This document shows, piece by piece, positions 31,201-55,200 of a DNA stretch of 64,000 nt. Each line of letters starts with the position of its first letter. Positions within the stretch are counted from its first letter, which is position 1. Source of the stretch: Botryllus schlosseri (lineage: Eukaryota); NCBI GenBank assembly GCA_051294905.1, contig CM119375.1, positions 26,288,001 to 26,352,000 of the forward strand, read 5' to 3'. The translations under genes and the position numbers were made by a program. The notes below the pieces were generated by a model. That model was not told where the DNA came from. It did no database searches and worked only from the letters and a program-made list of their open reading frames with translations.

Positions 31201-34200
31201 ACAAACAAACCTCAGAATAACATGAAACAATAACTTCATATATTATTGACGAGAAGCTTTCTGACTTACTCCAGACTTGTACAAACTACTGAATTTTCAT
31301 ATACGAAGCTAGTATTAGAAGTAACAGCCTTTAAAAATGTAAACTAAACTTAAAACACCGCTAACTAATAACTAATAATACGAATTACTGAATTGCAGAA
31401 GAAAGAAGTAATGTTGAAGATAGAATGGGGATTTCAAAAGGACGTAGTTTTGAGTTTGAAATGTGGGTATTTCGACCCCCAAAGCCCAGTCCCCATCTGC
31501 GCCACTGCTCGTAGTGATCACTCCTGGCAAACAACGGCTACAACAACATCGCAGAACAGAACACCGGTATCATGATTCATGCAAAACAATGACATATGGT
31601 TTTTCTAGTTGTGTGGTAAGTAATTTGTTAATGTACCTATACCTATACCTATACCTATAACTAGAGCTACTCAAAAAACCATGCGTTAGTTGACCGCCAA
31701 CTAATTAGATTATCAGTTTGAAGAAGTCTGACAGACAGCATCAGTGTAATAAATACTTTAATTAATGAATTAATGAACAATATAAAGTTTGGATATCATA
31801 TTAAAATTTTACTATGAAAAAGCGCACGCCGATACACACCTTCATCTTTTATGACGATGACTTTGGTTCTTTTCAGGCCGAGCGCGACTCCTTTTTCTTG
31901 GTTGTAAAGTTCAACCCAGAACATGATTTCACGTCCGGTAAAATTGTGTATCAACGGAATTTCGATGCTTGCAAATTCATCGTTGTCTTCAAATCTAAAC
32001 AAGGATATCGTTCAAATTACTGCTATCCTTAACAGAGTCAATATAAAAATATGTATAGGGACTGTAGATTGTAATTCAAGCGATGATGTATACGTGTTTC
32101 ACTATCACGGACCAATCCAGTTCAATCAAGAGCCTGTAAGTTCAGGATAGGGATTCGCTTTGGCAAGACCTTGAAAAAAACATAAACACCAAGTGAAGAA
32201 AACGTCACTTCACAAATTTAAAATCCAGAATAACGCAGTGACAAAAAATCTGGATACTAGATATTATATGTTTCAAATATTAGATGAATACATCAGGGTT
32301 TTCATTGAAGATGCAAGCTCGGTTTCATCGGATGGGCTCTGGATAAAATGACCAACATTGCAGTAACGATGACTTACGTGAGTTCACCACTTCCCCAGTT
32401 ATATTCTCGGTAGTCATAATCAGTCTCATCCACAGTATGCAGTTGGCTGCGATTTCCATTGGGCTCGCTGTAGGCTTCGGAACTTTGACTGGTTGCAATT
32501 AGCGGCTCCATTTCGATTGTCTGTCCGCTGGCGCCCTGAACTCTGCAAGTTGTATGTGTATTGTGAAGATTGGTTTTTGAAGATTACTCATTATAATATA
32601 GCGTTAATGTTTAATACCGTAATTAGACACACAATTTTACAATTTTAATTTATCTCTGCTCAAAAAGCAATCCATTTGATCATGGAATGGGGAAACAAAA
32701 TCACCGAAAGACTTGATAACATATTCTCAGCCAATGGAAAAGTCAGTGGGGACTGTAGCCTACCAATTTATGTATGTGAGTTAACATTTATATGAAAGTA
32801 CCTGACTATAGTACATGCATCGCATACAAACTTGAACACATATCGTTGTTATATTTTACATTAAAAGGACACCACAGTGTACATATAGTATAGACAATGA
32901 GTTCTTAACCAGAGTTCACACACACAAACCACAGGGGCGCACTGCTGATCAAGACAGACACACACACACGACTCATACAGAAGAAGTTACACCGACTAGC
33001 TTAAAATATTGAATAGCATCTTTTTATTTTGTTTGAAAACAATCTTTTAACGGTTTCGTTCTTCTAACATTGTTATTGAATCAAGTACAGTGTGCACCAG
33101 TATTATATAGTATTGTATGTGTTAGATGTGTAATGTAGTACATTTTTGTTCTTGTGACCGGTCCAATATTTGGGCTTCGGCAAAAGCTTGCAGATTACTG
33201 TAAGGGTTCGCCATAGGCAGAGGTTAAGATCCACCGCTACAGACTCCGTATCACAGCGTTGGCATTTCAATTTTCATTAAATAGCAATCGTGCGGAGGTT
33301 TACTTCACAAAATCAAGCGGATATACAGCAAATTCGAAATGACGGATGAATACATAAATTTTTAGAATTTTGCTCGTATTCACTCACTGTTTGACCTGAC
33401 GACGTTTTCTAGTCATCGTTCCCTCGACGCCTTCATTCAAAACCTCGAAATCGTCATCAGCAGCGGATCCTGGGAACACAATATTTTTTTCAGCACTGCC
33501 GCCAACAAGGGGGCCGACTTATGGAATGAGAAATTCGGTGCTGCAAGACTTATGAATAATGATATATCCCAAAGCAATTAGCATATACTTTGCCCAATGC
33601 AACAGTGTTATCGCTACATTCGATATTTTGCTATACCTAGCTTCAACGACATTCACAAAAGTTGATTAACTACAATCAAAAGGAATCCAACCGGAACACA
33701 TGAAATGTTTTACATACCAGCGTAAGTCTTCCATTTCAGAGTAGATTTTCCCTCCAAGAAATTTCGACGTACAGGAATAACTGCAAGCTTTGCACTTCTT
33801 CGTACCAGGTATTTTGCCTTGATGAACTCAACCACAGTACCTAAACAAATCATAGCGATATTATGAAAGAGATATGAACAAATTGTACATACAGGACTAA
33901 GTTGGGTTAAGATGCAAATTTTTTCACAAGATTTCGCATAAATAAGAGTACTGGAGAAATATTTACAGCGACATGTCATGTTACACTATATCAGGAATAT
34001 CACAATATCATTATTTTCATTCTATATGTACTGACGCTGACATAGATACCTCAGAAAAGAGCACAGATTACTTGAAATAACCCTTGGATTAGGACAGCTC
34101 TTGTTTTGTTGAATCCAGGATTAGGTCGAATCATTATATAATATTCAAATTTTCGGAATTTTCCGAACGCCAATTAATACAGATTTTTGGATTCGATACA

Positions 34201-37200
34201 CAATCAGAAAACTCAGTCAGCTTCAGTTCCTTGTTCCAGTTTTTGTAAAACCATGCTAATATTGCCACCACGTATTTATGATTTTATGACTTGATGATAC
34301 CAACATGCCAGGAGTTTAGCCATAACAACAATTTTTCTCACATGACTGAGCACTGAATCAACTGCTACTATTAGCAAACTGACAGTATTGGTGGTGGACA
34401 GCTGGTATATATATTCTTTTTGGAAGTAGACATGGTTGGCTATGCGAAATGAAGTGTACCAAATAATCATAGCAAAAATACATACCAGCCGCAATTCCCG
34501 GCAGGAGCGGTATCATGGCGGCCTTGGCCAGTTGGTCTATGTTGTAGTTTCTCTCTTCCTGGCGATCGATGATATACACACAGCATCTCCAGCAGCATAA
34601 CAGGATCAATCCGATGAGAAGCACGAGCAGGATTATGAACAGGATGATGAGAAGCGAATATTCCGACTTGCAGCCTAAAGAAAATTACTTACCGATATAA
34701 TTGACAGCATATAAGTATTTATATGTGCAATTCACACATAGGCGCTCAGAGGTCACTGTGGCTATTCAAGTATAGGTAAAACGATACAAAGTTAGGCCAA
34801 CATTACTGCATGTTAAAAATGGTTTGAAATATCATTTGATAACTAGCTCTAAGGAGAAGGCTGGGTAGACTTTAGGACAAATTCAATGATTAATATTTGG
34901 TTATCACAAGCAATCACTTCCAAATTTCAAGTTTCTGGTTATCACCCAGTTTTACACAGCTGTCTGGCAGATGTGAACATTTTGATTATGAGAATGATGC
35001 AAATATTTGAGTGTCATTGTGTTGTCAACGCCTCATCAATGGTAGTTGGCGTATTTTAGTCAACCATAGCTGTATAATATCACAATATCCTTGTATTAGC
35101 TTTTATCATGATATCAATGCCAGTTAAAACAGTGTTGCCAAGGCTAAACCATACATATTTGCATGTATACAAATCGATTATATCACAAATGGATTACGGT
35201 GTGAACCAGGTAAGGCAAAAAATCTCTGCCACTTTTTACAAGAGGAATGGAGGCAAATTGAACAAGATTTGGCAAGGGATAGCTAGCTGAGAAATGAACA
35301 AGTTTATTTCTTACACAACATCATCTTCCCGAACTTATAACTCTCGAACTTATGAACTTCAACTTATTCATATTATACACTATACACTGATAAGATATAG
35401 TCCACATACGCTTTTCCTTTTCTGCAGCTATATCCAATGTTCCGTCAGCGGTTTTCCTGTATTTGAAATAAAACTTGCAGTTGTCCGTTTCGTCCAAGGC
35501 AGCACACATTTCTTGGGAAGTCTGTTGTGCACTTTCTGCAAGGATACAATCACTTTATTAATGTCAACAAATTCAAAGTACAGGCCAAAGCCTTCAGTAT
35601 GTAGATTTCTGCAGGGTGTCTGTTTCCAGGGATAAAAACAGCCTGCATTTAAAAAAAAATAGATCAAGTACCAGTGTCTCGCTAATGTGACACTTTTTCA
35701 GTTGGATGATTTTAGTCTAATGAGTGCTGTTCATTGAAAGATACTGCAGATTCGTAGCATGATCAGAAATTGACAGGAACTGTTCCTAGACACAAACAAC
35801 AACTGCCATCATATTTAATTAGTTATTCGTGGGTCAGAGAGAGCCACAGGAAGGCTAGCCAGGAGCTGCGTGCGGTTTTAATAGCTGCGGTTGGGAATCA
35901 CTGCTCTACAGCAATGCCTTTATATACCAAACTGTATAAACTGATATTCAAGAGAATGAAATTGCTTACAAAAATTGTACAATTAATGGCTGTTAAGGAA
36001 TAACTTTTTTCCGGATTACGGGTTTTCACTGATTAAATTGTTAGGTTGCCCACAAAAATGCTGCAGACCAAATTTGGCTCAATTCCAGTTGGTAGGCTGG
36101 ATGTGAACAATCTAGGATGCATTCATGGATGATAATGTCATTAATCTTTAGGTCCACACCAGGGTTGTAATGACTCGAGTCATGACTCGACTCGAGTCCG
36201 ACTCGAGTCACGATTTTTGGATGACTCGACTCGACTCGAGTCATTTTCTCAAAATACGAAAATGACTCGACTTGACTCGAGTCAATCTGTGTATTGACTC
36301 GACTTGGACTCGAGTCATTGCGCATGACTCGAAGCAAGTCATTGACTCGAGATTCAGCCGGCCAAGACCGACATTTCATTGTAATTTCGAAGCCAACACA
36401 CTATTGGGATTTCGTTTGTTGGTACTGGTGCTTGAAAATGCGACCAGAAACTGCTAAAAGCGAGGAAAATTGATATATTATAAATTCGAACCATTCAATA
36501 TCACCAAACAGAGTTTAAAAAGTGGGTTTAGGAAGACTTTAACTGGAAACTGAGCAGTCAACACAATGACTTGGACTCGGACTCGAGTCATAATACCATG
36601 ACTCGGACTCGATCCTCTGTTCGGTGACTTGGACTCGGACTTGACTCGGTGGGAATTGAAAATGACTCGACTTGACTCGAGTCAAAAATATAAAAGTGAG
36701 ATTGACTCGTGACTCGGAGCCTTGTGACTTGGTCACAACCCTGGTCCACACAGACTACATTGTACTCTATGGAGTTCTGATGGATTTTACGTCATTTGAG
36801 ACCATAATTGCTAATATGACTTGCAGATTTGAGATTCTTCGTTTTTTCAAATGGATCATGAGTTGAAATGACTTGCTAAACCATACAGTTGTTTTGACCT
36901 GGAGTGATCGAATCTTTTTCCGCTGCGATGATATTGTCCACCGGTATGCCCTCTTGCGCGCAATATTCGTCGCATGTTGCGTTTTGAGGTCCCGTTCCAA
37001 AAAAATTGCACTGAATGCATTCCTGAATTCTGGCGCATGTCGGGCAGTTCTAAATGGATGAAAAAATATTACATCTGCAAACATGTTTTAATTGGCGAGT
37101 ATCTGATTGTAAAGAATTCATGACAAATTTGACTAAATTCCAACCGGTGAAAGAAAAGATACTGAATCGAAAAATTTTGTTTGCACAAATTGTATTAGAT

Positions 37201-40200
37201 CGGAAAATTCTCCAATTATTAATCAATGGAATTTCCTACTTCCTACTGATGGGTTTGAATTGAGCCAAATTTGTCATGCGTCCTTTTTTAACAACTCGAC
37301 AATTTGATGAAAATTTTTTTCAGTAAATTCAAAATTTGCTTATCTCTAATAGCAGTATGGAATCTATCTGAATTTGATATAGAGTGTTTTGATAGCGAAC
37401 CTAACAATTTTAGCGACTATCAAGTAGTATTTAAAAAAGATGTTTTGGAACAACACTAATGTCACTGTTATATCAAGCGTTAATAATAATATTGCTAGTA
37501 GGCCAAGATGCTTAATTGATAGACTGACCATCTTTGAAACTCTCTCACTGCAAATACGCTTTACAACCAAACCATATCTCACCTTGACACACGTGGCGCA
37601 AGTGGCGCCACCAAACCCGGTATCAGGATCACAGACGCATCTGCCACAGACACAGGATCCACGACCGGAGCAGATTTGACCGTCGGTACCCATGCATCCA
37701 GCAGTACTGCTTTGGCAACTGCAATCATGTCCCGTCCATCCCGCGTCACACTCACAGCTGCAGTCGCACCCGCCTTGAAAAACTTGTCTGAAAGAAAATA
37801 AGCCAATGCTCAATGTAATATGACACGGAGGGAGCAATGGTAAGGTATTTGCTCGAATATCTTTGGAAGAACTAAGAATTTTGAGGGGAATTCTCAAACA
37901 TTTCGATTGCTGAAGAGTATATATGATCAACAAAATTGTGTTACGAAACTGCACAGAATATTTGGAGTCTAAAGAGGTTAATGATGGAGAAAGAGCTCAG
38001 CGGGTTTGAACATTCAAGGTACAGCAGTATTCATAGAATAACTAAACATAAAACCAGCAAAGAGGATATCGTGTCTGATTCCCAACCAGATTGATCCATA
38101 TGAGATCATGAACCATGTAAATAACATTTGTATCAAATATGCATGTCTTTAATGGAAACGATTTTCAGGGTATTTACAGAGGAAAAAAAATAATTGATGA
38201 ACTTATTAATGAAATGGACCGAATTGAGAATAACTGAAGGACTCAATGTTGTTCAGTCCTATTCACCATACCACTTTCTCATCGATCTAATCAAATGCCA
38301 CATACAAGGAAGAAATGACATGATACAGACGATGACCGTGCACTTACTTTCCCCTGTTAGAACAGACAAGGCCAGCTCTCTTTGGACAATCGGCGCATTC
38401 GCAATATTGACCGAATATTCTCTCTTTCTTGTGCCTGTGGCCGGGATCGCAGAGACATCTGTCGTTTCTACACACGCCCCGGTCTATAAGGGAGACGCAC
38501 AAAAAATATGATAGCTGAATATCTACGGTAAATCTCTTCAGTTCAGGGGTTCCCAACCATGGGCCCCATGAGCCTTATCAGGTAGCCTTGTAGAAATATC
38601 CAGCTGTAATGATCACTTAGTAAACTCCACTATAAAAAAAGAATTAATTTGAAATTTAATAAAATGCTACCTAGTACAGCGATAAGCTACTTCTTGATCT
38701 TGAGTTTAGATTCTTACCTCAACTATTACATTGACTGATTATGTAATAACTAATAATTGTACTACCATGATCATTGTGTGTATTTATATCATTTTATCAT
38801 TCTAACTAGGTACCGATTACTGTATAGACCAGTTTTTTAAATTAAAATCAGCATCTTCCTTTTTTTCAAAAGATTGAAAGGAGTAGTGGATCCCACGATT
38901 TTTCAAAATTTCCGGAGGTGCTACGCTGTAAAATTGGTTGGAAACCCCTATTTTTGTTTCTCACTTGAGCATGTTCCATCCCCACATCCGGGTGCCAAGA
39001 CTGGAATGCTACAGCTCGGTCCAGTCCAGCCAACGTTGCACTCACATATGCCACAGACGTACGTTCCTTGGGAAGTGCATTTCGCGCTGTTTGGCTGTAT
39101 GATGATCGGTCGTATAGTAACAAGAAATATGGAGGAAAGGCACAGTGAAGCAGATTTGTACAAACTACCAATGTAATTAGTTGAAGGTTTTCTAACTACT
39201 GTTTTTTTTTGATAGTTTTAGCTCCATTTCCAGTTGTGCACTATAAAAAAAATTAGTTGCCAAACAACTATAAAACATGTGTCATCGTTTGGCGTGAATC
39301 GTGATCATCCGATGTGTGATGCTCTTGCAGCCATTGCTAACTCAGAGTCATCATGCTAACAGTAGCATAGCCAGGGGTGAGTTTCAAACTAGAATTCATG
39401 ATGTCCAAGTGGAAAGCTGGTCCGATTGCGATAAAATATAAATTAATGAGTTGCTTTGGAATAGAATCCAGGTTGTGTGTTGTCGTTATTCTCCTAGTTC
39501 CAGTGGCAAGCTTTGAAGAGTGAAAAGTACTAGTTCTAATTCTAGTTCTAGTTGCGGGGTTTGAAGAGTGAGTAGTTCGAGTTCCAGGGTTTGAAGAGTA
39601 GTTATAGTGCTAGTTTCTGTTGCCTGGTTTGAAAAAAGAGTAGTTCTCGTGCGAGTTCTACCGTAATGTTCCAAGTATAGTACGCCCCCATGTATAATAT
39701 GCACCCTTAAAATGGCATGCAAATTCTGGGAAAAAGCCTGTACCCATGTATAGTACGCACCCTGCATTCGCAGTACATGAATAGCTGTGTTTTAGTACGC
39801 GATGTTGTTCTGTTTTGCGATGTCACTGTCGAACAATCATGACATAACCATCGCTAATCATTATGCAATTAACTGCATTGTCTCTAAACAATAGTACAGA
39901 GTAGCCAAAGCCTGCGAGGTTGGCGACGCGATAGTTCGGGCCAGCGACACGACGTCTTGCGCACGAGGCCTATTACAGATGCGATTGCTAATCATTATGC
40001 AAGTAACGGTTTTGCCTCTATCGATAGTAGATAGCAGCCAAAGCCTGCGAGGTCGGCGACGCGACATCTTGTGCACGAGGTCAGATGCGATTGCTCAGGC
40101 CAACGGTTATGTCGTGCACACCACGCATGTTGGAGGTGCGACTGATTACGCAAGCAATTATATTTTGCGCACATGGCCTGTCGATGAAATAGCGAGGATT

Positions 40201-43200
40201 GCCACGCGCGCGTTCAGCAAACAATGAATGACCTAATTTCGCTTGCGTGCAAACGGCAAACCAACTCAGCAGGAGATTGCGTACTGTGCAGACGACTCTC
40301 GCTAATTGGCAACACGCTTTTTGCTAATTGGTAGCGCACGTTACACTGATAATACGAATTACTGAGCACGACGGCTGAAAGTGATACGCGATTGGAAACA
40401 AACATGAAGAAAGGTGTGATTTCAAGTTTTTTATCAAGGGAGATTTTTTTCAAGCGTGTTGTTCCCATGTATGATACGCACCCCACCGATTTTAGGGCAA
40501 AAAATCGTGAAAATTTTGCGGATTATACATGGAAAATTATGGTAGTTGCGGGGTTTGAAAAGAGAATAGTTGTAGTTGAGGGGTTCGGAAAGTGAGTAGT
40601 TCTAGCGCAAGTTTTCGTTCCAGGGTTTGAGAAGTGAGTAGTTCTAGTTGCGAGTTTTGAAAATTGAATAGTTCTAGTTCTAATCGCAAGTTTTAAAAAG
40701 TGTGTTTGCGTAGTTTTTGTTTTAGGTTTTTGAAAATCCAGTAGTTAGTAGGCCTACAAGTTCGCAGTGCTGCGTGCACCCACCACCGCATCTTTCACAC
40801 AATCGAACGCGCCGATCACGGAAGCTTTGAGGGAGATCTTCTCGTCGAAACGCCGGGTCTTGATATCGAACACTCCGAGATCGCAAACACCCAAGGGGCA
40901 TTTTTCACGGCTGGCGGCCAAGTACAAATCGTAAAGCACCTGAAATAAGATTTCAAATTGACAGGGATATGATTTGAGGATTCGAACTGAAATTCGGTCA
41001 CAATTGTAGCAATTCAAGTCGAGTAATGATGAATGATTTTTTCGACAACTGGAATCATACGCTTCTTGCCATTAAGAATTGATTTATCAACAAAAATTAT
41101 GGTTTCGACACTTTTTTCCACTTTGTAAAGCTATAAACCTCGATTGGCCGTACCGCAGCATACAAAATATGTAGTACAAGGCTACATATGTTAGCGGAAA
41201 TAACATATCTGCGCAACCGTGATCAAACCCAAAAGTGCAATGTAATAGGTATTGTTGACAAAATACCAAATAATCGTTATTTCACCCAGTGCATTATATT
41301 CTTTGCAGACGCCGAAAAGGTGGATTTTTGACTTTCCACTCAAATCCTAACACTCGATTTTACTTGGCCCTGGTCACTACACTCGAATCATCCATCAAAA
41401 ATAATGCTTGATTTGAGTATTCCAATCAGTGTACCCTACATACCACGTAACGCCTGCATATGTATAAACACAATAGTCACCTTCTCTTTGGTGGTGAGTC
41501 CAGTCACTAAGGCACTGTCGGAATGTAAAAGCGACAAGCCCCCGGCAGAAGCACCACCTTCATTTAAACCTGCTCCGTTCAATGCAAACCCTCCGGAAAT
41601 CGAGGCACTTTCTCCATTGCTTGATGAGCTAGCCAATGCGCCGTCAGACCCAGCAATGGCTCCCGCCCCACCAGCTATATCATTTTGATAAGCTTGTTCA
41701 AATGCGGAAACCCACGCGCTATCGCTCCATATAGATCCGCCTGCAGCACTGCCAACAGAGCCGGCCGCCGTTTCGTTGAGTGTGTAAGTGTACCAAGGGC
41801 AGAGGATGTCTGTGCTGGGATTGCCAGTAACAAGTTCTTGCTGCCCTGTGGATAACAGGAAAGGATTTAAAATCAAGTCTCACCAGACTTATAATGAAGT
41901 TGTCTAATTAGAATGATTAAAGCAAAATGCTGGTAATCTAATTGTAATTTGTAAAATGTTTCTATGCTCTCATTTTACTTGTGATTTAATTTCAGGTTTT
42001 CTTGAAAATAATACAGAAAAACTGTATAGTGCAAAACGAACCAAGCCTGGTGCACAGACACTTCCTGTTCTCGTGCTTATGAGAATGAGTTCCAATTTGG
42101 CATGAGCTGAACGTTATATTTCTTTCTAATTCGGATATTAAAGGGGCACTGCACTCTAAGATTATGTGGTCTCGAATTGACGGGCAAAACGAAAGGAAAA
42201 TTTTGGCCGCAGCCGTTTTCTTTAGAACGCCACCGTAATGGAGCTGCAATTTATTGAAATTTTGATAGCAGCTTCACGCTCCAGCAGTCACGCAGTGATC
42301 GAACTTTATATAGTTGTCAGCCGATGCTATGAAGGAAATATGTCGTACACGCCCTATGTCCTAAGGAAATAGAATACACTAGGCCCGATTTTGACATAAA
42401 TCTCCTGACTGAACATCTTCCGATGAACGCGGTATCTAAACCACCTTGGCGTGTACCACATATTTCCTTCATAACATCGGCTGACAACGATCTAAAGTTT
42501 GATCTCTGCGTTTTGCCCTTCAATTTGAGACCACATCATTTTTAGAGTGCAGTGCCCCTTTAATGTAATTTCCAAGTTTTTGTGCATTCCATACTTATAA
42601 ATTCAATCTAATTGGAAAAAAGCTGAATATATTCTAGTCATGCCTCGACCAAAAAGCAGTCGATAATTTACAAGTCAAATATTATAGCAACCTTATTCGT
42701 TTCAAACATTTCACTTAAATGTGACTTGGGACTATCCCGTATTGCTGCGCAACACAGCTTCAGTCTGATAATCAATCGCAAAACTATTGACAATTTTGAG
42801 AAGGCGCTTTGAAACTCAAAGTTTGAAACAACTCAGAAATTAGGCCTAATTTTTAGCTTTAAATCGTTCTGGTAATCCACACTTCTTCAGTAAGCCTGCC
42901 AAGTATTTGCATATGGCACGATGGAGAAGAAGCCAATTGATCAAAGTCTTATGGTAACTCGCGCAAAACGCCAGCAAATCTACACGTCAATTTATCTGAA
43001 TAATGAGACAGGGTTAGGGGGAAGGGGTAACCAATGATTTACCAGAGATTTTCTTGTAGGCTTCCTCGACCAATGCGACAACGTTTGAAGAATCGGTGCC
43101 CAGAACGCCCGAAGTAGACCCCTTGAAATATTCGTTGGAGATTCTCTATAAAATGAAATTGATTGATTATAATAAACATTTGGCACATTTGTATAATACC

Positions 43201-46200
43201 CGAGATGGAATAGCCAGTGTACAGCACATTGAGGAGTCGTGTCATAAAACACTGCGACAGTATACCTTTGGATATAGCACTCATGACTCAAAATAATATA
43301 AAAGTTATTTTAAACTAAGATCCTATATAATCATGTATAAATTTCTACATAAATATCAAGAAAAGGATTTCAAGATGTTAGTGCAACTATGCAACAGGTT
43401 ATGAAATATAATTTTATCAGAATTGTAACATTTAACTAGAAAATTACAATTTCACAGCATAATTTTGAGACTTTTTTGTAGCATCACACTACGACTAGAG
43501 CACATTATCGGTAGATACCTTAATTACAGTGATTGGTGAGTACGAGCAAACAAAGGTAAAAAGGGATCACATGGTATCCGTGTTTTTACTTTACAACTTG
43601 TGGAAAAAATGGGCTATCAAAAAATCCCTCTTTTTCGAAACAAAAGCAAATGTAAGTTGGAATAGTTTTCCTTGCCTAGTTGCATCCTCATAAAGCAATA
43701 ATATTCTAGGATCATGCTACCTCATAAAGATCCGCGTAGACTTTTTTTACAGCGAAGATTGGAGTAATCGAGTTGCGTTCGACAGCTTGCACCACCTGGC
43801 TAATCGACGGATAATCCTGTTCTTCCGCTTTAGTGTACCTTTCAGAGCAAATTAAGTACATATCATTACATGGATAGGCAAAATATCAAAATATTAATCA
43901 ATCGCTGAGTCAAAATACCCTGCTAGTGAAGTGCTTCTGAAATGAATACACCAGATAGGCCTATATCAGGAAATATTGAATATACAATTGGAGTCAACTA
44001 ATTCAACTTATGTCAAAACCAAATTGTCCATGACAAGGGAGTATCAGCGTAATGATGCCAAAACCAGTATGTAATACTATATACTATGCGCATGCACAAT
44101 CAGAGCTGTTCAAAAATAACTTGTTGTTCGGTTGCCTAAAAAAACGCTGCACACCATTTTGGCTCAATTCCAACCTATCGAAATCATTGCTATAAGGAAA
44201 AAGGTTTTAAATTTATCTAATAAAAATAAGTATAACATTTTTTCGATTTTTATCGGCTAGTGGATACCCCATGCAATTGTCAGGTTGTCAGTAAAAACGA
44301 TGCACAACAAATTTGGCTCAATTCCAACCTATACAAGCGAACTCAGTGTTGTTCAAAATTTAGGATTACAAATCATAGTATTTACGGTGGGTAGATCTAT
44401 CATAAACATTCAGAGAATTTGACACTTCAATACTATTTTTTTTCAAATTCAAAATTTTCTACTTAAATAACTTTGCTTCTGCTGGTTGGAGCTGGGCCAA
44501 AATTGGTGTGCAGAGTTTTTTTAGGCAACCCAAGAATTCTACCAAGAAGTAAAATTTGAAAAACAAATTTATTTTTGAACAGCCCTACTGGCACATTGCA
44601 CAATGCACGTTTACCACATATCGTAACAATGACTTAAAAGAAAATGTGGTAGTGATGTGGTAGTCTTACTGACCATTTGATCAGCCTTAAGCTACCTAAC
44701 CATCTTACATAGTAGGTCTAGGCACTGGGATTAATGTGAATTTTAAATTCAAATCCTAGTCGAGTATTGAATAAAAGAATTCGAGTCCAGTATTGACAAT
44801 TGACTTTTTGGCACCATTGAGCACCAAAATTTCGACAATAAATTATTAATTATTAAATGAAACCTATCATTAACTGTTTCTCAACACCGAGAAGCAATGA
44901 AAACTTGGTTTTCTGGTGTCAAATATTATATGGACTGTAGCATAAGATAATCCCATCAACATTTCTATATTTGCAGAATAGGGTTCCCTTTATTTCAGTA
45001 GGCTATTTAAGAATAGCTGAGAACCATTTTTTAAACATTAATATGTATCCTGATTATAATAAGTGATTGCATGTTTCAGGATACATCCACATCATTATTT
45101 GATAATCTTACACTTTTCAGAAAGTCAGGTTATGTTCCTACTCATGACAATCAAGTAAATAAACGTTAATGTAATCTTGCACCAAAAGATCTGCGTGAAT
45201 AGCATTCTACACAAAAATGTAAGCCAGCCTTTGCCAACCACCATAGTAACTATGTACTATGCACGCATCTATCAGCAAAAGAAAATATATTGGCATTAGT
45301 AGATATACAAAACTGCAATAACACAACACCAAGAGTGATATGACATCTGCACTTGAAAAAAAATCAGAAAATAGTTGGAGATAACGGGCCGCACATTGCC
45401 TAGAGGCCTGACGTGGTGTCTTCTACCGTGGCAAAAATGTGCAAATCCAGCTTAGTGTATACAAAGAGAGCATGTAGTCTGTCATGAATGAAACTAGTCA
45501 ATATCGATCTTGAGACAGACAAAAAGAAAACATTGTCTGTTATGAATAAACAGATTTTAACGTAGCAGACTCCAAAGAAGCTTATATTACTAGAATTGTA
45601 TTTTAATACCTTGACACTGGAGGCAGGCACATAGACCTCGATTAATCTGACTTTGATTCATGACCACAAAAAGAGTGAAATTGACTTTGTCATCAACTTT
45701 TGAATATATATTGCTTGAACTACTCATTGAAAGGTTTTGTTATATTCCTCCTTCCAACACTCTTGGTCAATAATTATTTCAACTCCACAATGGTGTTTTG
45801 ATGGCAAGTCGTTATCAACAGTTCATTACTCTATGAACAGACTTGTACAAACTTCTGGTTTTTCAAAATGAGCAACTAGAACTAGAACTAACGACCATTA
45901 AAAATGTGCGACCAACTATATAAAATAGATTAGACTAGATTCTATTCCGAACCAACTCAATCATTTTTTATTTTATCGGAAGCGGGTTGGTTTTCAGCAT
46001 GAACATCAGTACAAGTTTATATGAGGGGGTTTCGACCCGCAAAACCTACCACTTGGCTAAAACACTGATAGTAGTGATGACTTTGAGCTAGCAATCACAC
46101 AACAGAACACCAGTATCACGATTCACACCGAACGACATGACGTGAGTTAATATTATGTTATTTGGGGTTCCCCAAGTTAATACAGGTTAACAACCACTCA

Positions 46201-49200
46201 TATATATATAATGTAAAGTCATAGCATGAAAACATAAAGATCTATCCATCATAAACTCCAAGTTCGAATACTCACACTCCGGCGGAGTTGGTGTGGCACT
46301 GTCCGTCATTCTTTTTCACAATTCCTGACAGGAGTCCGGCACCATCGTCGGCATAGTGGAAAGCTGATTCCGTAGCTATCATGAGAAGTCGTAATGCGTC
46401 GTTACGCCAGCCGACCAAATTCTAAAAGCATAAAACCTATTAAAGTCTCTTAATCCTACTGTCAAACTGCGCTCGTGGTAAATTCCAGAAGAATCGAAAA
46501 TACAATGTGTACTGTGAAGGTGAAAAATTGAGATTACCGAAGGGCGGTAATATCAAAGTATCCAAGCAAATGACATCATTAAACCAATATGCATAAAACT
46601 GGTACATAAATTTGGTACAATTTGGAAATTCCAGTGTATGGTTTGGGAGTCGTTGATTCATTTTTTTACTCCTGAGATGAGATTATGTTTCAACTTTACT
46701 CCAGAAATACCAAGAGGCTTCGAACTATGCATAAGACAGCCGAGTTCAAACGATGAATCTAACTTTGCGAATGAGCCAAATTTAAATTTGTGATCCGGCC
46801 TTGGACTCACAACAATGCGATCAGTGATTAAGTTGAGAATCTTCCCGATAGATACAACTTCTCACTTGAAACTCTTATTTTAATTTAAGAAGAGAAGATG
46901 TAGTTCATTATTTCTATTGGGTGCAAGGAGAATTTCATTATCAGGTACAATATGAATCGCCAACAAAGCCTATATCAAAATAATACTCCTAATTTGTATA
47001 GCTTTTAATTATTGGTCGTAATTTGAAAATATGCCGCACATAAACGTTGCTGAATTTACAATAAAAATTCAGCTGATTAATTCCAGCCCAACATGCATAC
47101 TTGGAGTGCCAGAAACACAACATTTCACATCTTCACCAAGATACGAATTAATATAGTCCACACTCACACGGCAATCTAACAGCACTGAAGACCCTATTAC
47201 CAGTATTAATTGTAGGAATGAACAGCGGTGGCATCATTGTACAATGTACAGTACAGGTCAATATATTTTAACAGCAGTTGGCCAACAGCACTATAACACT
47301 TTTTAAATACTGTGTTGGTTCCAAGCGAAACACATACTTGGCATTTAACAACTTGCAGCATGGCGTCCAATGCTCCTTCCGGTGGATCGAGATTTCCAGA
47401 TACAGTTTCATTTCTCAGCGTATCCTCAAACTTAGATACATCAGGTGTCAACGGAATAACGTTCTTGAACAGAAACGGTGCGTCTGTGTAATTTTTGTAT
47501 GGATGTTGCAGCCTGTAAGAAAATACACAGGTCAAGCAGAATAGACTAGCACAAATTACCAATCTTGTTACTTGGCCCACTAACCACTGTTTTTTTTTTA
47601 GTAGTTCTAGGTCTAGTTCTAGTTGCAGATTTTGAAAAGTGAGTAGTTCTAATTCTTGTTTTAGTTCTAGTTGCACATTTTAAAACGAATTCAACTAGAA
47701 AACATGGGTGTCCGGTCAATACCTAGAAAACCGTTACCGAGAATGACATTACCGAGAATGGACACCACTGAGAATGGACATTACAGAGAATGCAATGTAG
47801 TCAATGCAGGCATGTTATGCATGTTCAGGTCATCACGGCGTTGCCACATTCAGTGTCGATGCTCGGATATAAATTTCTCGACAATGTCCATCCCAGGAAG
47901 TTAGATTCTCGACATTGACCATTCTCGGTAATGGTTTCTTCGGTATTGGTATAGAACCAAAAACATGTGCCATTGTTTGGCAAGAATCGGTGTACCGGTG
48001 TTCTGTAGTGTGAATTTCTTGCAGTTGAGTCAAAACTACGAACAGTGGCGTAGTCAGGGGTGGGTGTTGGGGGTTGGAACCTCTTGCATTACAAACTCAA
48101 ATCCATGTCTTTCTGAAATGACGAATCTATCTCCAATATTCCTTAGCTCATTTGCCATTCAGTAACATTCATTATCAGTTATTGGTTGGTTGTGTTTTAG
48201 TTAGTTAGTCGCAGATTAGATGATAGTTCTAGTTCTAGCAGTGCATTTTGAAAATCCAGTAGTTTGTCCAAGTCTGAAGCAAAAACATCTCTCCTGGATA
48301 GCTGGAGTTGATGTAATCCAATATTTTAAGTGACAATAACACTTTCGCAGTAAAACTATCCATCCAATGTAAATACGGCACCAAAACTACAACAGATACT
48401 TGAGAGGACTCTTCAAATATTGACAGTATCATGATTAGTGTGTCATTTTCACTCAGTAACACTAATAATAAACATGCAGGATAGAACATATCTACACTCT
48501 GAGAATGTTTCAGTAGTGTTGTGTTGTCATTCTGCTGTTTTATACCTGATATGGTCGCTGTTATGCCATAATTGTAATCGAGTGTGTATACTTATGATTA
48601 TAACGTCCCAAGGATAAAATTATTTCGATATTTTGAATTTGGTTAACCGCAATTAAGGATGAGAATCGGTCGAAAAACTTGAAGTGGAATAAATTGGCAA
48701 TATGAAGATATTGTTTGTTGCTATATTGAAGTTGTGTACGTTCTAGCAGCCGACTATTCCATAGTGGCGACTTGTAAAGTGTTTCTAAATTTGCCCAAAT
48801 ACATAAAAGTACAGAAAGATCATCCTAATTTTATATCACGGTGAGGTACATTAGACTAGCTGTGATAATACATAAATTTGCAAGTATCCAGTAGCATAGA
48901 ACTTTGGAACTCACCGGTAGGGCGTCATTTGCGTCATGGGGGACTGAACTTTGTCAACAAACTTTCCGAATCCAAGTCTCACCGAGTCTTTCAGGCTGTC
49001 ATCGCCAGCGGCGGCATTCGTCAATTCGTTGAGTTTTTTCACTGCATAAATAATGTCAATACTGTTACCAGTGAATTTGGAATTTGGTGAATTTGGCATT
49101 AGAAATGTAATAACTACTATTATTATGAAGGCGATTCAGCAATATTGTATTAATAAATTCGAAAATGAATGTTTCACTGAATACAGGGCAAATAAAATGA

Positions 49201-52200
49201 ATTCTCAGATATGCCACTGCATGTTAATTTGGGACTTGTCATTTGGTATGTATTAACGTATTTGGGTTAGAGCTTAGATTAGGGTTCGGGTTAGGGATGA
49301 GGGACTTTAGCCGTGGTTCTCAACCAGGTGTCCGCGGACCCCTAGGGATCAGTAAACCCCTTAAATTTACAGAATAGCTGATAACCTAATTTGTTTATAT
49401 TTTAAATTAGAGAAATCATGAGGCAGTTTCGCTTGAAAACTGCTAAAACTCCATAACTCACATAAACAGAATGGCCTGAGATGAATTATTCTACTATGAT
49501 ATTAATAGTTAAATTGCCAATAGCCTACTGATACAAACATGTTGTTGTTTAGAGATGTTTTGGTGGGGTATTGGAAAAAAATTGTTTGCAAAAATCCAGT
49601 TTCTCCTGACCTGTGATATACATAACAGCTTTTCCAGAATAACTTCAAGATGAGCTGCTAGATAGAAATGACTACTCCGAACGTTTATGTTCACAAAAAA
49701 GCTGTTTCTCAATTTTGTTGTCATAAATGTTGCGATCATTCCCAGAGGTGTCGTCGGAGGCGTTGCGCGTTATCACATTCGCCACCACCTATCTTTGTGG
49801 AAATAGATTTTGAGCACACATTCATATCAAATAGACAGCACGGAAATTCAAGACACGACCGCACACCACATATTTCAAGAAATTTCTCTAGATAATTCGC
49901 ATTGAAATATTAAAAGACTTCCCAATACCTACATTAATAGTAGGTTATGATGTCATTTTCGAGAATGGTCATGGTCATTCTGTTGCTGTTTATCACTATC
50001 CTGCAGTTGATATTTGCACAGGACATATGACGGTTGCACGATAATAGCGCTAAATTTGAAGTGCAAATTTTGGGGTCCGCGGGGGTCCATGACGGTCCAA
50101 ACGGAGTCCGCGAAGACAAAAAGATTGACAGCCACTGGACTATGGTTACGCGTGAGGGTTGGGGTAGGTTAGGATTAGGATCTAGGTTCGTCAAGTGCCA
50201 AATTCAGCGGTAACCATCATAACTACGAATTTTTAACTAGCAAAATTATACAAACATCCCATGCAGCTCATCAACCGACAAACAAGGTTATCTATGTTAG
50301 CAATCTTAGCATTACTCAGAACCTGCATGAGATAAGCTAAATCCCACAACCAGGATGATGGATGTACTGATACCCTGTACAGTACAGTATAATCTAGGAC
50401 AGTGGTTCTTAACCTGCTGGCCACAGACCTGTTTGGAAAATTATGAAGATGGTTATCAGATTAGTCTTATCATTACAGCAAAGGAATCAAAAATCACAAA
50501 TTTAGTCAACATTTTCGACTCAGGGTGTAGGTGTGTGTCTGTGACGTAATAATAGCGAATAAACAAGTTAGGTGATGGCATATAACAATCCATCATTAAT
50601 AGCAACGGGACGGAATTTATTCTCTTCTTAGACACCCGCACAATATTCAGGCAATTGCAACATGACCACTAGGGTTGTCCAAAATTTGAAAAATTTCGAA
50701 AATGCTGCGTTGTAATGTCTTATTCTATAGATTATTGATTAAAAACATCAACAAGCCTGAAAGAAGCTCTCAGGAACGTCGTTAAGATTTCTTACAAAGC
50801 GTTTGAAAGTAGCCGTCTGCATGTGGGCGGGGAATCGATGAAGTGGGCGGGCAATCACGAACCTAGAATTTTGATTGGTTGGAACCTGTAATAATAAGCT
50901 ACTGATTGGCTGAAATACTGATTTTGTGATCATTGCTGGTCACGATTTCGTTCTACTCTGTTGTGTTGGTTTGCAGCCATTTCTGTTCGTGGCATTGGCG
51001 ATATGGTAAATTGACGTTGTTAATGCTGCCATCGACAACAGCATAACGATCCAGTAATATATTTTCTACCTGAACACTGTGTATAACAGTTTTGTTACTT
51101 CTTGCACAGGAGCTTGGCCAATTAAGATAAGAATGAACTAGATGCATGCATCGTGCTACCTTCGAGCCTTCTAAAACATACCAGTTGACAACGACTGTAA
51201 CTCATAAATTGCAAACCAGTAGTCAATTTCTCCTTATGGCTTGTTATGGTAAGTCGACGTCTCTCTCTAAAACGAACGCATATTACACTTTTTATTCAAG
51301 ATTTAACAAAGGCAAAAATGCTATTTACAAAAGGCATCATTAAAAAGTATATCGCAGGGTCAGTGTTGCAGATCACTGGCCTTTGATAAGAGTAGACTTC
51401 CTGCTGTCTCCAAAAATCTTCCTATGCTGTTCCACAGCTTGAAGCAAACTGTCTCTTTGCTGTTCATTGTCAGTCAAGATTGCAGCATAGTCTGTGCTTA
51501 GCTTGACACCTCTTTCTGCGGCATCATTAACGACTTTGACAGAACTAACGTAGCAATTCATTTTATTGAATGAATCTGAAAAGTGCCAATCATCAACCGG
51601 TTGACGCAGCCAATCCCCAGAGCATTCAAAAACTTCAAATATGTACCACGACTGGGGCCCAATAAGGTCAGACAACGTACTGTCCTTGTTGATCTGTATA
51701 GTTGCATTCAATGAGGGTGGGCCCCTTCTGAAACTGGAAGTTCGCTCTACTTGCAGGAGCGCCTTTGCCATATTTTCCCGGGTTTCCTTGCTTTCCGTCG
51801 GTGAAAACAAGGCGTATACAGCGGTTTCCTCAACAATATACCAGTCGTGCTTCAAAAGCTTTCGTGAAGCAGCTGTGGAAACTTGCTCATCATATTCCTT
51901 ATAACTCAACATGTGCTGAACGAATCTCAAGTCATTACCAGCTGCATCACGACCAATGCTTGAATCCACCCACGCAGGGATATAAAAGAGAACCAAAAAT
52001 AAATTGAAGCGGCGCAGCAGTTCAACTTCTTCAGATTTGTAATCTAATTGGTCGGCCCACATGAACATCTTTTGAGCATACAGAATTGTACCCATCCATC
52101 TCGCATGGTGTGCTGCACCAGGTTTGTGATGACGTATATCTTCATCTGCACCGAGAAGAGCAAGAGCATTAGTCACACATTGCTTGTAGTCATCCCGTGT

Positions 52201-55200
52201 GAAAAAATCTTTTCTGTTCAACAGTAGCTTGAACTTATCAACTATCATTGCAGCTCGTTCAGCAAAACATAGAGGAATAGTCAGAGTCTTGAATTGCTGT
52301 TCCCTGTCAAGACTGCTCCAGTTCCTTTTAAGGTGGGCAAACCATGCATTCTCTGGTCCAGTTGTGGGCTTTCCAAATAAAGATTTCCAAACGTCTTTCA
52401 CTACCAGCTCATACACATGGTGCCGACATGCATGGTAGAACACCTTCCTTCCTAGAAGGTCTTCAAGAATCTTTGCCGCACCCTTCTTCCAGCCGCTGTT
52501 GCTTGCTGTAGTGTCAAAAACCAAAGCTGTTACAGCATCTTTTATATTCCAACTTTCAATTATGTTGAAAGTGGTTTCTGCTTGCGTCTGACCTGCAGCA
52601 TTTTGCATCTTTTGAATGCCAAGTAGTTTTCCTTCTGAGTATTGAGGATGACAAGATAGGACAATTGACAGAGCCTCATACCGATTTCCTAATCTATCCT
52701 CTGTGAGCTTTCCATCCCAATGAATAGCAACATGTTGAGGTTTATTTTCTGCAAATTTTTCTGAAATATCCTTGGAAATTTCAAGACGATTTGTTTCCCT
52801 GGCTCTCTTTGTCGAAGATCTTGACAGAGAGAACATTGCTATGTCACCGCCACAAGCCGTAATAAATGCTCCGATCAGCATTGTTGCCTTGTTGTCTGTT
52901 ATTTGCAATCGATCCAGAGCTTGGGACACATGGGTATTATTCATAATATTTTTAGGTGCCATCAGCTTAATGGCTGTCGAGGTGCCAAGACCAACATCAG
53001 CATCATAATCAGAACTTGAACTCAAACTATCACCCTCTTTTGAAGATGAAGAAGATGCTAAAACAACATAGTCATCACTTGAGTCATGTTGAATGTTTTT
53101 AACAGTTCTATCCGCCATGGTTGCTGTTTTCTTTTCGATGTCTTTAGCGAGAATCTTGTCTCTTCCCAACATTATGCATTTGCGAGATTGCTGTTGATCT
53201 TCATAGAATGCAATGTCTTCGAGCTTTCTATCATGTGATAGATAAATGTCATTTTGTATTATTGCTATCGCATCTGTACTTCCAATATCCCACAACTTGT
53301 CCAAATCTTCCGTGAATTTTTTCCTCTTACCCTTGGGATCACTTTCCCGTTTCATGGTCGCCTTCAGAAAAATATATTTTTTGTTCAGTTTTTCAAGTAA
53401 TTTCACCGCATTTCCTTTAAGTATTGTGGCAATTCTCGCCATTTGCCACACTGTCATGACATCATGAACCACCACATTACATAGCTCACGAGTAGGGGTT
53501 GACTGAGGGCAATGGTCTTTCAGATGCAGAAAGTAACTCATTACTTCTCGCAAGGTTGGTAATCTCGAGCCACAGATGTAATCGCAAGCATATCCGACCA
53601 AGTAATGCTCAGATCGAGATCTTGTTCTTCTCTGTGGCAAGTGCACAGTCTTCCGCCGTTTTGCCTCTGCCATGACAGTAATATTTTTGCCTTCTATCAT
53701 AAATTACAGCTACGCCTAAAACATTTAAGTAACAAGTGTTACATTACGACTATTAACTCACCAACCCACAATGCCCTTGTACATAACCACAACCACTACT
53801 AACAAAATCGACCTCATCAGAACAGAAAATGCTGCTGCAACTAAAACATTGATCAAGGAACAAGTGTTGCATTACAACTATTGATGCATCAACCCACAAT
53901 GCGCTTTACAAATTCCCGTCTCTACTAACAGACTCGACCTCCGCAAAACAGAAACTACTGCTACAACTGATACATTCGAAGAACCACTGTTACATTACTA
54001 CTATTGACTCATCAAACCACAACACGCTTTTACAGTATTACAGCCGTCACCAACAGACTCAGCAGCAGCAAAACCTACTCCTTCTGTCAAACACGGTGAA
54101 GCACCCAAATCAGAGCTGACAGCCGCCGTCATCATTGAAGCATAACCGATTACCCAATCAAGAATCGTGGTTTCGTCATTGCCCGCCTAGTTGCAATTTT
54201 GCCGTCGGTGGCCCGCCCACTCTTTGGCAGCTACTTTCAAACGCTTTGTAAGAAATCTTAACGACGTTCCTGAGAGCTTCTTTCAGGCTTGTTGATGTTT
54301 TTAATCAATAATCTATAGAATAAGACATTACAACGCAGCATTTTCGAAATTTTTCAAATTTTGGACAACCCTAATGACCACTGGTCATTGACCAGTGACC
54401 AGTCGCATACCCACTGACCGTCAATCAATGTGTATCACAAGGTCTGGTTGAGGAAAAATGAGTGGATTGTGAATATCCTGTTACCCGTAGCTGTGTAAGA
54501 GGGAGTGGAGTCTAGGGATGGAGCCAATCATAAAACCAAAACCGGCAGAACAGTAATAATATATTCACAGCATCATATTTAATGCAACAATTTCATGGGG
54601 TTTGACAGCAAAATTTGAAAAAAATACATTTTTTATAATAAATCCAAATTTTTCAAACTCAAGAGTGTTCACATCTACCAGTTATAATTGAGTCAAATTA
54701 GGAGGGCAGCATTTTTTTAAGCCATCTAACAATTCAATCAGCAAATCCCTGGAATCCGAAAAAAACAATACATTTTGAACAACCCTAAATTGCAAAGTCA
54801 TGTTTACTTGTCTCTATCACGTCACAAATGCAGAATTCATTCCATATTAACTTGAAAACTAATCAAGGATTTGAACTATGTTTGCTCTTAATTGCCATCA
54901 ATATGAAACCATTGATGTTTATTTCATGAAATTCAAACCATAGTTTGCTAGATAGAACAGTGTTGAAACAAATCTATGCACATTTACTGCACCACATAAA
55001 TGTCGATTGGGACATCAATTTTAATTGGCATTTTACCGAGATCTTTTCCCAGGTCTTTCACATTTTCAAGATCGTCTTCCATACTGAATGAAACGTCCAT
55101 GAGGTAGTAAAAATCCACTGGATAGACGGGAGGCTCTTGTACAGAGAAAGGTACTCGCACTGTGTCACCAACTCTGATTTTAACCTGAATATAAGAGATT

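Follow-up and report, generated by a model that had tools for sequence, protein, structure and literature searches.

A stretch of 64,000 nucleotides from the tunicate Botryllus schlosseri (assembly GCA_051294905.1, contig CM119375.1, positions 26,288,001 to 26,352,000 of the forward strand; called the window here, with no N and about 38% G+C) appears to hold most of a gene of about 75 kb for an integrin beta chain with a PSI domain, a hybrid domain, a betaI domain, four I-EGF domains, a beta-tail domain, one membrane span and a cysteine cluster. It is very probable that this gene is the orthologue of vertebrate ITGB4, with a giant tail of Calx-beta and FN3 domains, and that vertebrate beta-4 itself has two Calx-beta domains, not one. 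In place of an NPxY tail, the Botryllus chain would carry about 21 Calx-beta domains, two FN3 domains, about four further Calx-beta domains and a final FN3 pair. Orthology to beta-4 is not new in itself, because Ewan et al. (2005; PMC1145181) called Ci-beta5 of Ciona intestinalis a beta-4 orthologue, with a tail that could not be determined. The new content is the architecture of the tail and the hidden Calx-plus-SEA-like unit of vertebrate beta-4, the orthology being known in outline.

Why place this gene with beta-4? As far as sequence comparison can carry it, the case is solid. In a phmmer search of 1.84 billion proteins with the 58-residue betaI exon 3, the top full-length matches are lamprey beta-4 (59% identity) and sturgeon, hagfish and teleost beta-4. 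The betaI domain, joined from its six exons, was aligned over 253 columns with 10 vertebrate beta-4 chains, beta-1, -2, -3, -5, -6 and -7, the four paralogues of the same genome and 30 invertebrate chains. In the resulting tree the gene is sister to the 10 vertebrate beta-4 chains with a support of 100/99, and it groups neither with beta-1 nor with invertebrate clades. The tree from 709 columns of the ectodomain gives the same sister relationship (100/99), and on these columns a placement with beta-1/beta-7 fails the approximately unbiased (AU) test (p 0.007, a difference in log-likelihood, delta lnL, of 32). Trees were built with the site-heterogeneous model LG+C20 by posterior mean site frequencies (PMSF); beta-8 was left out of the sampling, beta-2 is partial, and beta-6, a broken gene model, entered the betaI tree only.

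Discrete characters agree with the trees. Among 59 aligned chains, the lysine of GFG-K-F, TES (not TDA or TDS) and a two-residue insertion after DGA are found together only in beta-4 and in this gene, as is a short cysteine-free specificity loop ending PF[SL]FKNVI.LT. The positions of the metal-ion-dependent adhesion site (MIDAS), the site adjacent to it (ADMIDAS) and the synergistic metal-binding site (SyMBS) are filled as in beta-4 (DVSFS, DD, NLDPPEG and the Glu of TES). All 40 introns of burbot ITGB4 were mapped. The one before G-RKVGF is a phase 1 intron in the Gly codon of LLP-x4-G, the same as in the Botryllus gene, and four betaI introns are common to both genes; the Botryllus gene has one further betaI intron. 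An initial annotation of the window had proposed a beta-4 orthologue from short motifs and from the corresponding motifs of human beta-4. The human motifs given there match primate, elephant and other vertebrate beta-4 sequences, and the proposal is borne out by the trees, the ectodomain AU test, the shared indel, the signature residues, the shared intron and, as described below, the tail architecture and FN3 orthology.

All motifs quoted in that annotation are encoded on the minus strand of the window, among them GFGKFVDKV (48973-48947), TESAFHY (46373-46353) and CCWRCC (34597-34580). The quoted strings are real, and both that span introns are canonical GT..AG conceptual splices which keep the frame. 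The first joins exon 49041-48915 to 47512-47338 (..QMTPY-R-LQHPY.., phase 2). The second joins the transmembrane exon 34674-34486 to 33840-33717 in phase 1 within a Gly codon (LLPGIAA+G), with donor GTATGT and acceptor ttag. The range assigned to the gene, 33718-55184, ends on exon borders, namely the acceptor of the first betaI exon (55184) and the donor of the first Calx exon (33718); the gene is larger, with PSI exons at about 58.2 and 56.6 kb and a tail that spans the rest of the window and some 15-17 kb beyond the window start. On stop-free segments Pfam matches PSI, Integrin_beta (six exons), I-EGF, Integrin_B_tail and Calx-beta. From the membrane-distal end, the parts of the gene, all on the minus strand (-) and in part located with hidden Markov models (HMMs), are as follows.

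58090-58188 (-): PSI domain exon (core); Pfam PSI_integrin, E 1.9e-5, and junction enumeration
56505-56654 (-): second PSI part and start of the hybrid domain; purpose-built integrin-beta HMM, junctions 58090/56654 and 56505/55184
55037-55184 (-): betaI exon 1 with the MIDAS motif DVSFS; Pfam Integrin_beta, E 3.1e-10, phase-1 donor placed as in burbot ITGB4
48915-49041 (-): betaI exon 2 with GFGKFVDKV and the first part of the cysteine-free specificity loop; Pfam, junctions and alignment
47338-47512 (-): betaI exon 3 with the remainder of that loop and the SyMBS/MIDAS stretch NLDPPEG; Pfam and phmmer
46276-46421 (-): betaI exon 4, carrying TESAFHY and the two-residue insertion of beta-4 type (DGA-GL-LSGI); Pfam and alignment
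43721-43838 (-): betaI exon 5; Pfam and junction enumeration
43043-43145 (-): betaI exon 6, end of the betaI domain; integrin-beta HMM and junctions
39098-43042 (-): stretch in which, from its position, the C-terminal half of the hybrid domain (about 90 residues) should be encoded
39097-38965, 38483-38348 and 37787-37583 (-): three I-EGF exons; Pfam I-EGF_1 and EGF_2, integrin-beta HMM and junctions, with junction 38348/37787 uncertain by a few residues
37049-36899 and 35511-35410 (-): two beta-tail-domain exons; Pfam Integrin_B_tail, RNA-like contigs mapping to 36899-37051
34486-34674 (-): transmembrane exon with the LLCCWRCC cluster and a 36-residue juxtamembrane stretch ending LLPGIAA+G; motif, junction and an RNA-like contig at 34530-34673
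33717-33840 (-): N-terminal half of Calx-beta 1, starting G-TVVEF; positions 2-40 of the gene's own Calx HMM, domain E 4.6e-8, RNA joint 33717/33468
33468-33388 and 32542-32378 (-): two small exons for the end of the first half and the low-complexity insert (about 65 residues) of Calx-beta 1; GT..AG joints, continuous frame
31835-31994 (-): C-terminal half of Calx-beta 1; positions 59-114 of the own Calx HMM, E 3.2e-14, RNA joint 32378/31994
145-31163 (-): Calx-beta 2-20, mostly one N-half and one C-half exon each; Pfam Calx-beta on several exons and the own HMM

The membrane-proximal segment of vertebrate beta-4

Reviews give the beta-4 tail five globular domains (PMC4452579), and between the membrane and the annotated Calx-beta domain (about residues 988-1106) Pfam finds nothing save weak SEA scores. 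What occupies this segment? By eye, its start resembles Calx strands A-C (G-x-MVGF..Y.L....LDTP.LR.G...G...V.WKV) and its end resembles strands E-G (G.VEFQEGVE.VDVRVPLFI..EDDDEK.L.VEA.DVP.G.A.IG.R.VNITIIKE). A profile of 70 vertebrate segments, compared by hhalign with a profile of the Botryllus gene's Calx repeats, aligns residues 3-56 with Calx positions 3-53 (probability 83%, E 8.5e-6) and, in a second collinear match, residues 179-234 with positions 55-109 (E 2.8e-4), so that the two together cover the model from 3 to 109. The controls stay at E 0.087 (the connecting segment) and E 0.13 (FnIII-1,2). Against a profile of the vertebrate canonical Calx domain alone, just the C-terminal half scored (E 0.018), because that profile is too shallow and the diverse profile of the gene's repeats is needed.

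Structure prediction leads to the same place. An AlphaFold2 model of elephant residues 751-1112 (33-sequence alignment; predicted local distance difference test score, pLDDT, 85.5) brings the two distant halves together as one sandwich, with an alpha/beta module between them and the known Calx-beta domain after it. Both sandwiches of this model align with the tandem CBD12 of NCX1 (Foldseek E 3e-16, VIA Z 15.8, 218 residues). The lamprey segment modelled alone reaches a pLDDT of 90.8 and a predicted template modelling score (pTM) of 0.87, and in an exhaustive search of 48,161 PDB chains all eight matches with Z of at least 8 are SEA or Calx-beta domains. VIA Z scores to NCX1 CBD1, CALX CBD1 and the beta-4 Calx crystal structure 3fq4 are 8.3-8.6, with 104-113 residues aligned across model residues 2-238; for 3fq4 the values are Z 8.5, 104 of 109 residues and a root-mean-square deviation of 2.2. 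Profile and models support the view that in vertebrate beta-4 the roughly 240 residues after the membrane span fold into one whole Calx-beta sandwich, whose halves are kept some 125 residues apart by a SEA-like insert. Because these residues would make up a full sandwich, vertebrate beta-4 is counted here with two Calx-beta domains. The initial annotation had taken the juxtamembrane segment for a relic Calx-beta strand. Profile comparison, AlphaFold models and PDB search agree on its Calx origin; it is predicted to be the first half of a complete domain and not a leftover strand.

The insert itself aligns with the SEA domains of MUC16 over 111-120 residues (Z 9.0-9.4, and 9.2-9.3 for the elephant model). 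Pfam SEA scores stay below threshold in 24 of 33 vertebrate sequences, with a best score of 22.8 bits against a cut-off of 26.4. The models point to a SEA-like fold and not to a member of the SEA family. In burbot ITGB4 (residues 756-991) one exon codes for the Calx N-half, four for the insert and one for the C-half; the three parts are separated and flanked by phase-1 introns, and the introns inside the insert are in phases 0 and 2. Such an arrangement would be expected of an insert that arrived by exon insertion into an intron splitting the Calx domain. The same gene has an 11-codon mini-exon coding for ACLALLPCCGA.

How close is this segment to Calx-1 of the Botryllus gene? In both lineages the first Calx domain has an insert after the third strand. 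The two inserts are unrelated, the tunicate one short and of low complexity and the vertebrate one SEA-like, with no match in the tunicate tail; the introns inside the first Calx domain also differ in place and phase between burbot ITGB4 and the Botryllus gene. The spacing pattern through which the initial annotation had likened the start of the vertebrate tail to Calx-1 holds in part. The intron there is identical in position and phase; the likeness of the residues is generic, and LLP is missing in lamprey and hagfish. No specific kinship with Calx-1 was found: among the Calx halves matched by an HMM of the vertebrate N-terminal part, Calx-1 ranks tenth (domain E 2.0).

The Botryllus tail and the direction of its evolution

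An iterated HMM of the gene's own repeats detects 26 Calx-like units, one of them doubtful, and twenty of them lie within the window. Past the window start follow one Calx domain, two FN3 domains, an insert-bearing Calx, three ordinary Calx domains (two of which share a single 276-codon exon) and the last FN3 pair (Pfam-supported). Four units, at 33.8, 26.4/25.7, 15.97 and -6.8 kb, have a Ser/acid-rich insert after the third strand; the first three are five domains apart, and three of the four form a clade (95/93). The inserts, all in the same loop, are rich in Ser, Asp and Glu (for instance SSSSSEDE) and lie at 33388-32378, 25713-25540, 15973-15722 and -6731 to -7042 relative to the window start; from their composition, they may be casein-kinase-type phosphorylation clusters. 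An acidic cluster at the calcium-binding position is kept by about six of the 26 units in a crude count. Spacing is a likelier role for the array than calcium sensing.

The four FN3 domains form two pairs. In the FN3 tree vertebrate FnIII-2 and the last of them (FN3-d) are sisters (100/98, 46% identity). The remaining three have long branches and fall on the FnIII-1 side. No FN3 domain of the gene joins FnIII-3 or FnIII-4, and no orthologues of these two were detected in the 60 kb searched downstream. On the strength of this tree, the C-terminal block of the gene (insert-bearing Calx, Calx, FnIII-1-like domain, FnIII-2) is collinear with the vertebrate order of cryptic Calx, Calx, FnIII-1 and FnIII-2. 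A tandem array that keeps its original upstream border on the first unit and its downstream border on the last would fit both the intron shared at Calx-1 and this collinear last block. The split between FnIII-2 and FnIII-4 predates that between FN3-d and FnIII-2. FnIII-4-type domains were thus present before the lineages parted and are missing or unrecognisable in the Botryllus gene, so there were losses on the tunicate side too.

Did tunicates expand the array or did vertebrates reduce it? Of the two, expansion in tunicates is the history that we hold to be the likelier, and we lean towards growth by duplication of a block of five domains. Of six periods tested, five alone shows an excess of in-phase identity (permutation p 0.01), and the best Calx pairs are five units apart (C04/C09, C02/C07/C12, C01/C06/C11), a periodicity which, in the repeats themselves, suggests internal tandem block duplication. 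The initial annotation had suggested the reverse, a common ancestor of tunicates and vertebrates with a long multi-Calx tail that vertebrates cut down, leaving degenerate remains near the membrane. There are arguments for it. The repeats look old by their divergence (pairwise identity has a median of 24% and a maximum of 42%), the space between the FN3 pairs holds Calx domains in tunicates and the disordered connecting segment in vertebrates, and the order of the FN3 splits requires domain loss in one lineage anyway. However, in fast-evolving tunicates repeats may look older than they are, the membrane-proximal Calx of vertebrates is predicted to be complete and confidently folded, and the five-domain periodicity reads as the trace of block duplication. 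In the Calx domain tree the deep nodes are not resolved (24/30), and no vertebrate domain is paired with a particular tunicate domain. The connecting segment, tried as a decayed Calx block, was rejected, as its hhalign match to the Calx profile (E 0.087) has the level of a control. Reduction in vertebrates is accordingly unlikely, if still to be reckoned with, and the claim as the initial annotation put it is unproven in view of the tree, the connecting segment and the periodicity; mixed histories take up the small rest.

From these pieces an ancestral state can be tentatively drawn, which we put forward as possible and short of probable. The beta-4 cassette of the ancestor would have run from membrane span and cysteine cluster through an insert-bearing Calx and a second Calx to FnIII-1 and FnIII-2. 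In vertebrates, what is drawn as a linker of about 250 residues would be a folded Calx plus SEA-like unit with a role of its own in hemidesmosome assembly or signalling, and tunicates would have multiplied a five-Calx block into a cytoplasmic rod of about 100 nm (at about 4 nm per domain). If true, this rod would be a way of spacing membrane and cytoskeleton not known in any other integrin.

Continuity of the transcript and points against the reading

Does the tail belong to the integrin at all? The RNA data for 31500-37490 comprise two sets of RNA-like contigs and two raw RNA-seq runs. RNA-like contigs and a few raw reads cover the beta-tail exon (36899-37051), the transmembrane exon (34530-34673) and the Calx-1 exons, with minus-strand GT..AG joints at 33717/33468 (two raw reads), 33388/32542 (one raw read) and 32378/31994. 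These joints exposed two unpredicted small exons, which code for the insert of about 65 residues in Calx-1 and with which a stop-free frame runs from the beta-tail domain via the membrane span to a complete Calx-1. The joint from transmembrane exon to Calx-1 (34486/33840) is absent among those listed, so we infer it from the sequence and the conserved intron. Its absence would suit a reading in which two genes have been run together, an integrin beta with a short tail that stops soon after the membrane span and, behind it on the same strand, an unrelated giant protein of Calx and FN3 domains; read-through at the transmembrane-exon donor meets a stop after about 50 codons, so that a short isoform is possible. 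Two genes are nevertheless very improbable. The junction is canonical (GTATGT...AG) and in frame, burbot ITGB4 has an intron of identical position and phase, and the two exons have similar k-mer depth in the same runs. The transmembrane exon lacks an NPxY-type cytoplasmic domain (no Integrin_b_cyt Pfam match on its open reading frame), the far end of the tail holds the FnIII-2 orthologue, a beta-4-specific module, and both a start exon and a signal are missing for a separate gene.

Several further points weigh against the overall interpretation and have to be set beside the evidence above, together with the TM-to-Calx-1 joint missing among the RNA joints and the small number of units with an acidic cluster. 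No convincing exons for the second half of the hybrid domain were found in 39098-43042, where two stretches score weakly (42273-41995, E 1.5; 41071-40757, E 0.034), and neither the true start of the gene (5' end, signal peptide) nor its true 3' end was found. With the betaI domain only, the AU test is underpowered, and two alternative groupings stand unrejected (p 0.20 and 0.16); under the first, the constrained group remains beside beta-4, the constraint having dragged the paralogues there. The branch of the gene is long, at 0.96 to 1.6 changes per column. On the vertebrate side, the Pfam Calx-beta HMM has no match on the membrane-proximal segment, and the two-Calx reading is drawn from predicted structures and from profile E-values and not from experiment.

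Long branches on the gene and on the beta-4 stem, and the non-significant betaI-only tests, could be taken to mean that a fast-evolving tunicate chain from a different clade acquired Calx and FN3 domains independently and was drawn to beta-4 by convergence or long-branch attraction, an explanation that is barely credible given that support stays at 100/99 under LG+C20 PMSF, that the 709-column test rejects the beta-1 grouping, that the two-residue indel and the loss of the loop disulfide are common to both, that the FN3-d/FnIII-2 tree is independent (100/98), that an intron is shared with burbot ITGB4 and that three other tunicate-specific paralogues do not join beta-4.

These paralogues belong to a repertoire of five integrin beta loci in the 495.5 Mb assembly. 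One of them branches as sister to vertebrate beta-1/2/7, a tandem of three makes up a separate clade and the fifth is the gene described here; a Branchiostoma floridae beta chain reaches at most 53% identity. The tandem trio (C1:16170000-16354000), two members of which are nearly identical in betaI, forms a lineage-specific clade which resembles the ascidian-specific chains of Ciona and Halocynthia. Ciona has the same five-gene pattern as Botryllus, with one beta-1-like, three lineage-specific and one beta-4-like chain (PMC1145181).

Some observations made along the way concern the introns and the wider searches. The 6-kb intron between betaI exons 1 and 2 contains, on the gene's strand, an uninterrupted open reading frame of 776 codons (51376-53703, minus) with no Pfam match, probably derived from a transposon or a virus, or else a nested gene. 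An Ala/Gly/Ser-rich open frame of 147 codons (41439-41879, minus), unlike integrin sequence, lies where the hybrid-domain exons are expected. The intron between the beta-tail exons holds an element at about 35900-36900 with a summed k-mer depth of up to about 78,000, against 10-50 on exons, many internal joints and variants in the RNA-like contigs, and raw RNA reads on both strands; it looks like a highly expressed, high-copy repeat family. The betaI exon was also matched, in eight separate stretches, by a 1994-residue protein on a 22.8-kb metagenome contig. Elsewhere in the genome, matches to cellulose synthase and glycoside hydrolase 6 (GH6) lie 3.3 kb apart on one strand, and a further GH6 copy is close by (C9:15025585-15029521, 15068570-15068854). 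The CesA-GH6 fusion is known among animals only from tunicates, and the gene may be duplicated in Botryllus schlosseri.

Proposed function and comparison with known systems

What might such a chain do? For the alpha partner, plakin binding and the spacer role alike, we infer function from relatives. Outside the cell the chain would pair with a laminin-type alpha chain and bind basement membrane. Next to the membrane, the cysteine cluster matches the region that is palmitoylated in vertebrate beta-4. The Calx array would be a long rod that serves as a spacer and is mostly independent of calcium; the solved beta-4 Calx domain is reported to be calcium-independent, and PDB titles list it as crystallised with and without calcium. 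By analogy with vertebrate FnIII-1,2 and plectin, the terminal FN3 pair would dock a plakin-type linker to the cytoskeleton. The last FN3 domain keeps two arginines (NR-LVF and YR-SLLVEDL) at positions which would be those of the plectin contacts R1225 and R1281 in human numbering, and which serve as a lead only. Because the FnIII-2 orthologue is conserved and both plectin-contact arginines are apparently kept, the link between integrins and plakins may be older than vertebrates.

The nearest known system is vertebrate ITGB4, the hemidesmosome receptor subunit through which skin cells are anchored. Both genes share betaI residues and an indel found only in beta-4, a cysteine-free specificity loop, a cysteine cluster after the span (LCW[KR].C), the lack of an NPxY tail, a tail of Calx-beta and then FN3 pairs including the FnIII-2 orthologue, and the intron at the start of the first Calx. 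They differ in that the vertebrate protein has two Calx-beta domains against about 25 in the Botryllus gene, a disordered connecting segment where Botryllus has its second Calx block, a SEA-like insert in the first Calx instead of a short low-complexity one, and one betaI intron fewer. For ITGB4, a human disease gene, the domain map would change from the five cytoplasmic domains described in reviews (PMC4452579) to seven predicted here. A second Calx-beta domain with a SEA-like module, in a region drawn as linker, offers a structural frame for variants and binding studies in residues ~740-990. In the literature searched, no paper describes this unit, which may be visible in public structure-prediction or domain databases.

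Compared by published description, the Botryllus gene is the counterpart of Ciona Ci-beta5, which likewise groups with vertebrate beta-4 and has short Calx-like open reading frames within 10 kb downstream (PMC1145181). Whereas the existence of a tail is unsettled there, the Botryllus tail is laid out and partly backed by spliced RNA, in a much larger genome of 495 Mb. The question left in 2005, whether a tunicate beta-4-like chain carries a beta-4-type tail, is thereby settled, as the tail is present and of unusual size. A 2024 survey lists the pair of Calx-beta and Integrin_B_tail (ITGB4) as a vertebrate invention (PMC11788884, Table 1), which a tunicate gene with both domains contradicts; beyond that survey, ascidian integrin tails with Calx-beta are not covered in the literature searched.

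Other Calx-beta and SEA proteins are more distant. The SEA domains of MUC16 and TMPRSS share the SEA-type alpha/beta sandwich predicted for the vertebrate beta-4 insert, whereas that insert is cytoplasmic, lies within another domain, falls below the Pfam cut-off and is absent from the tunicate gene. CBD1-CBD2 of the Na+/Ca2+ exchanger is the founding cytoplasmic Calx-beta tandem. NCX1 and Drosophila CALX thus have tandem Calx-beta sandwiches in the cytoplasm as well, but their exchanger membrane domain is not in the Botryllus gene, most units of which are without the acidic calcium-site cluster. Long tandem Calx-beta arrays also occur in ADGRV1, FRAS1/FREM and the sponge aggregation factors, which are rod-like adhesion molecules; their arrays are extracellular, whereas that of Botryllus is cytoplasmic and attached to an integrin.

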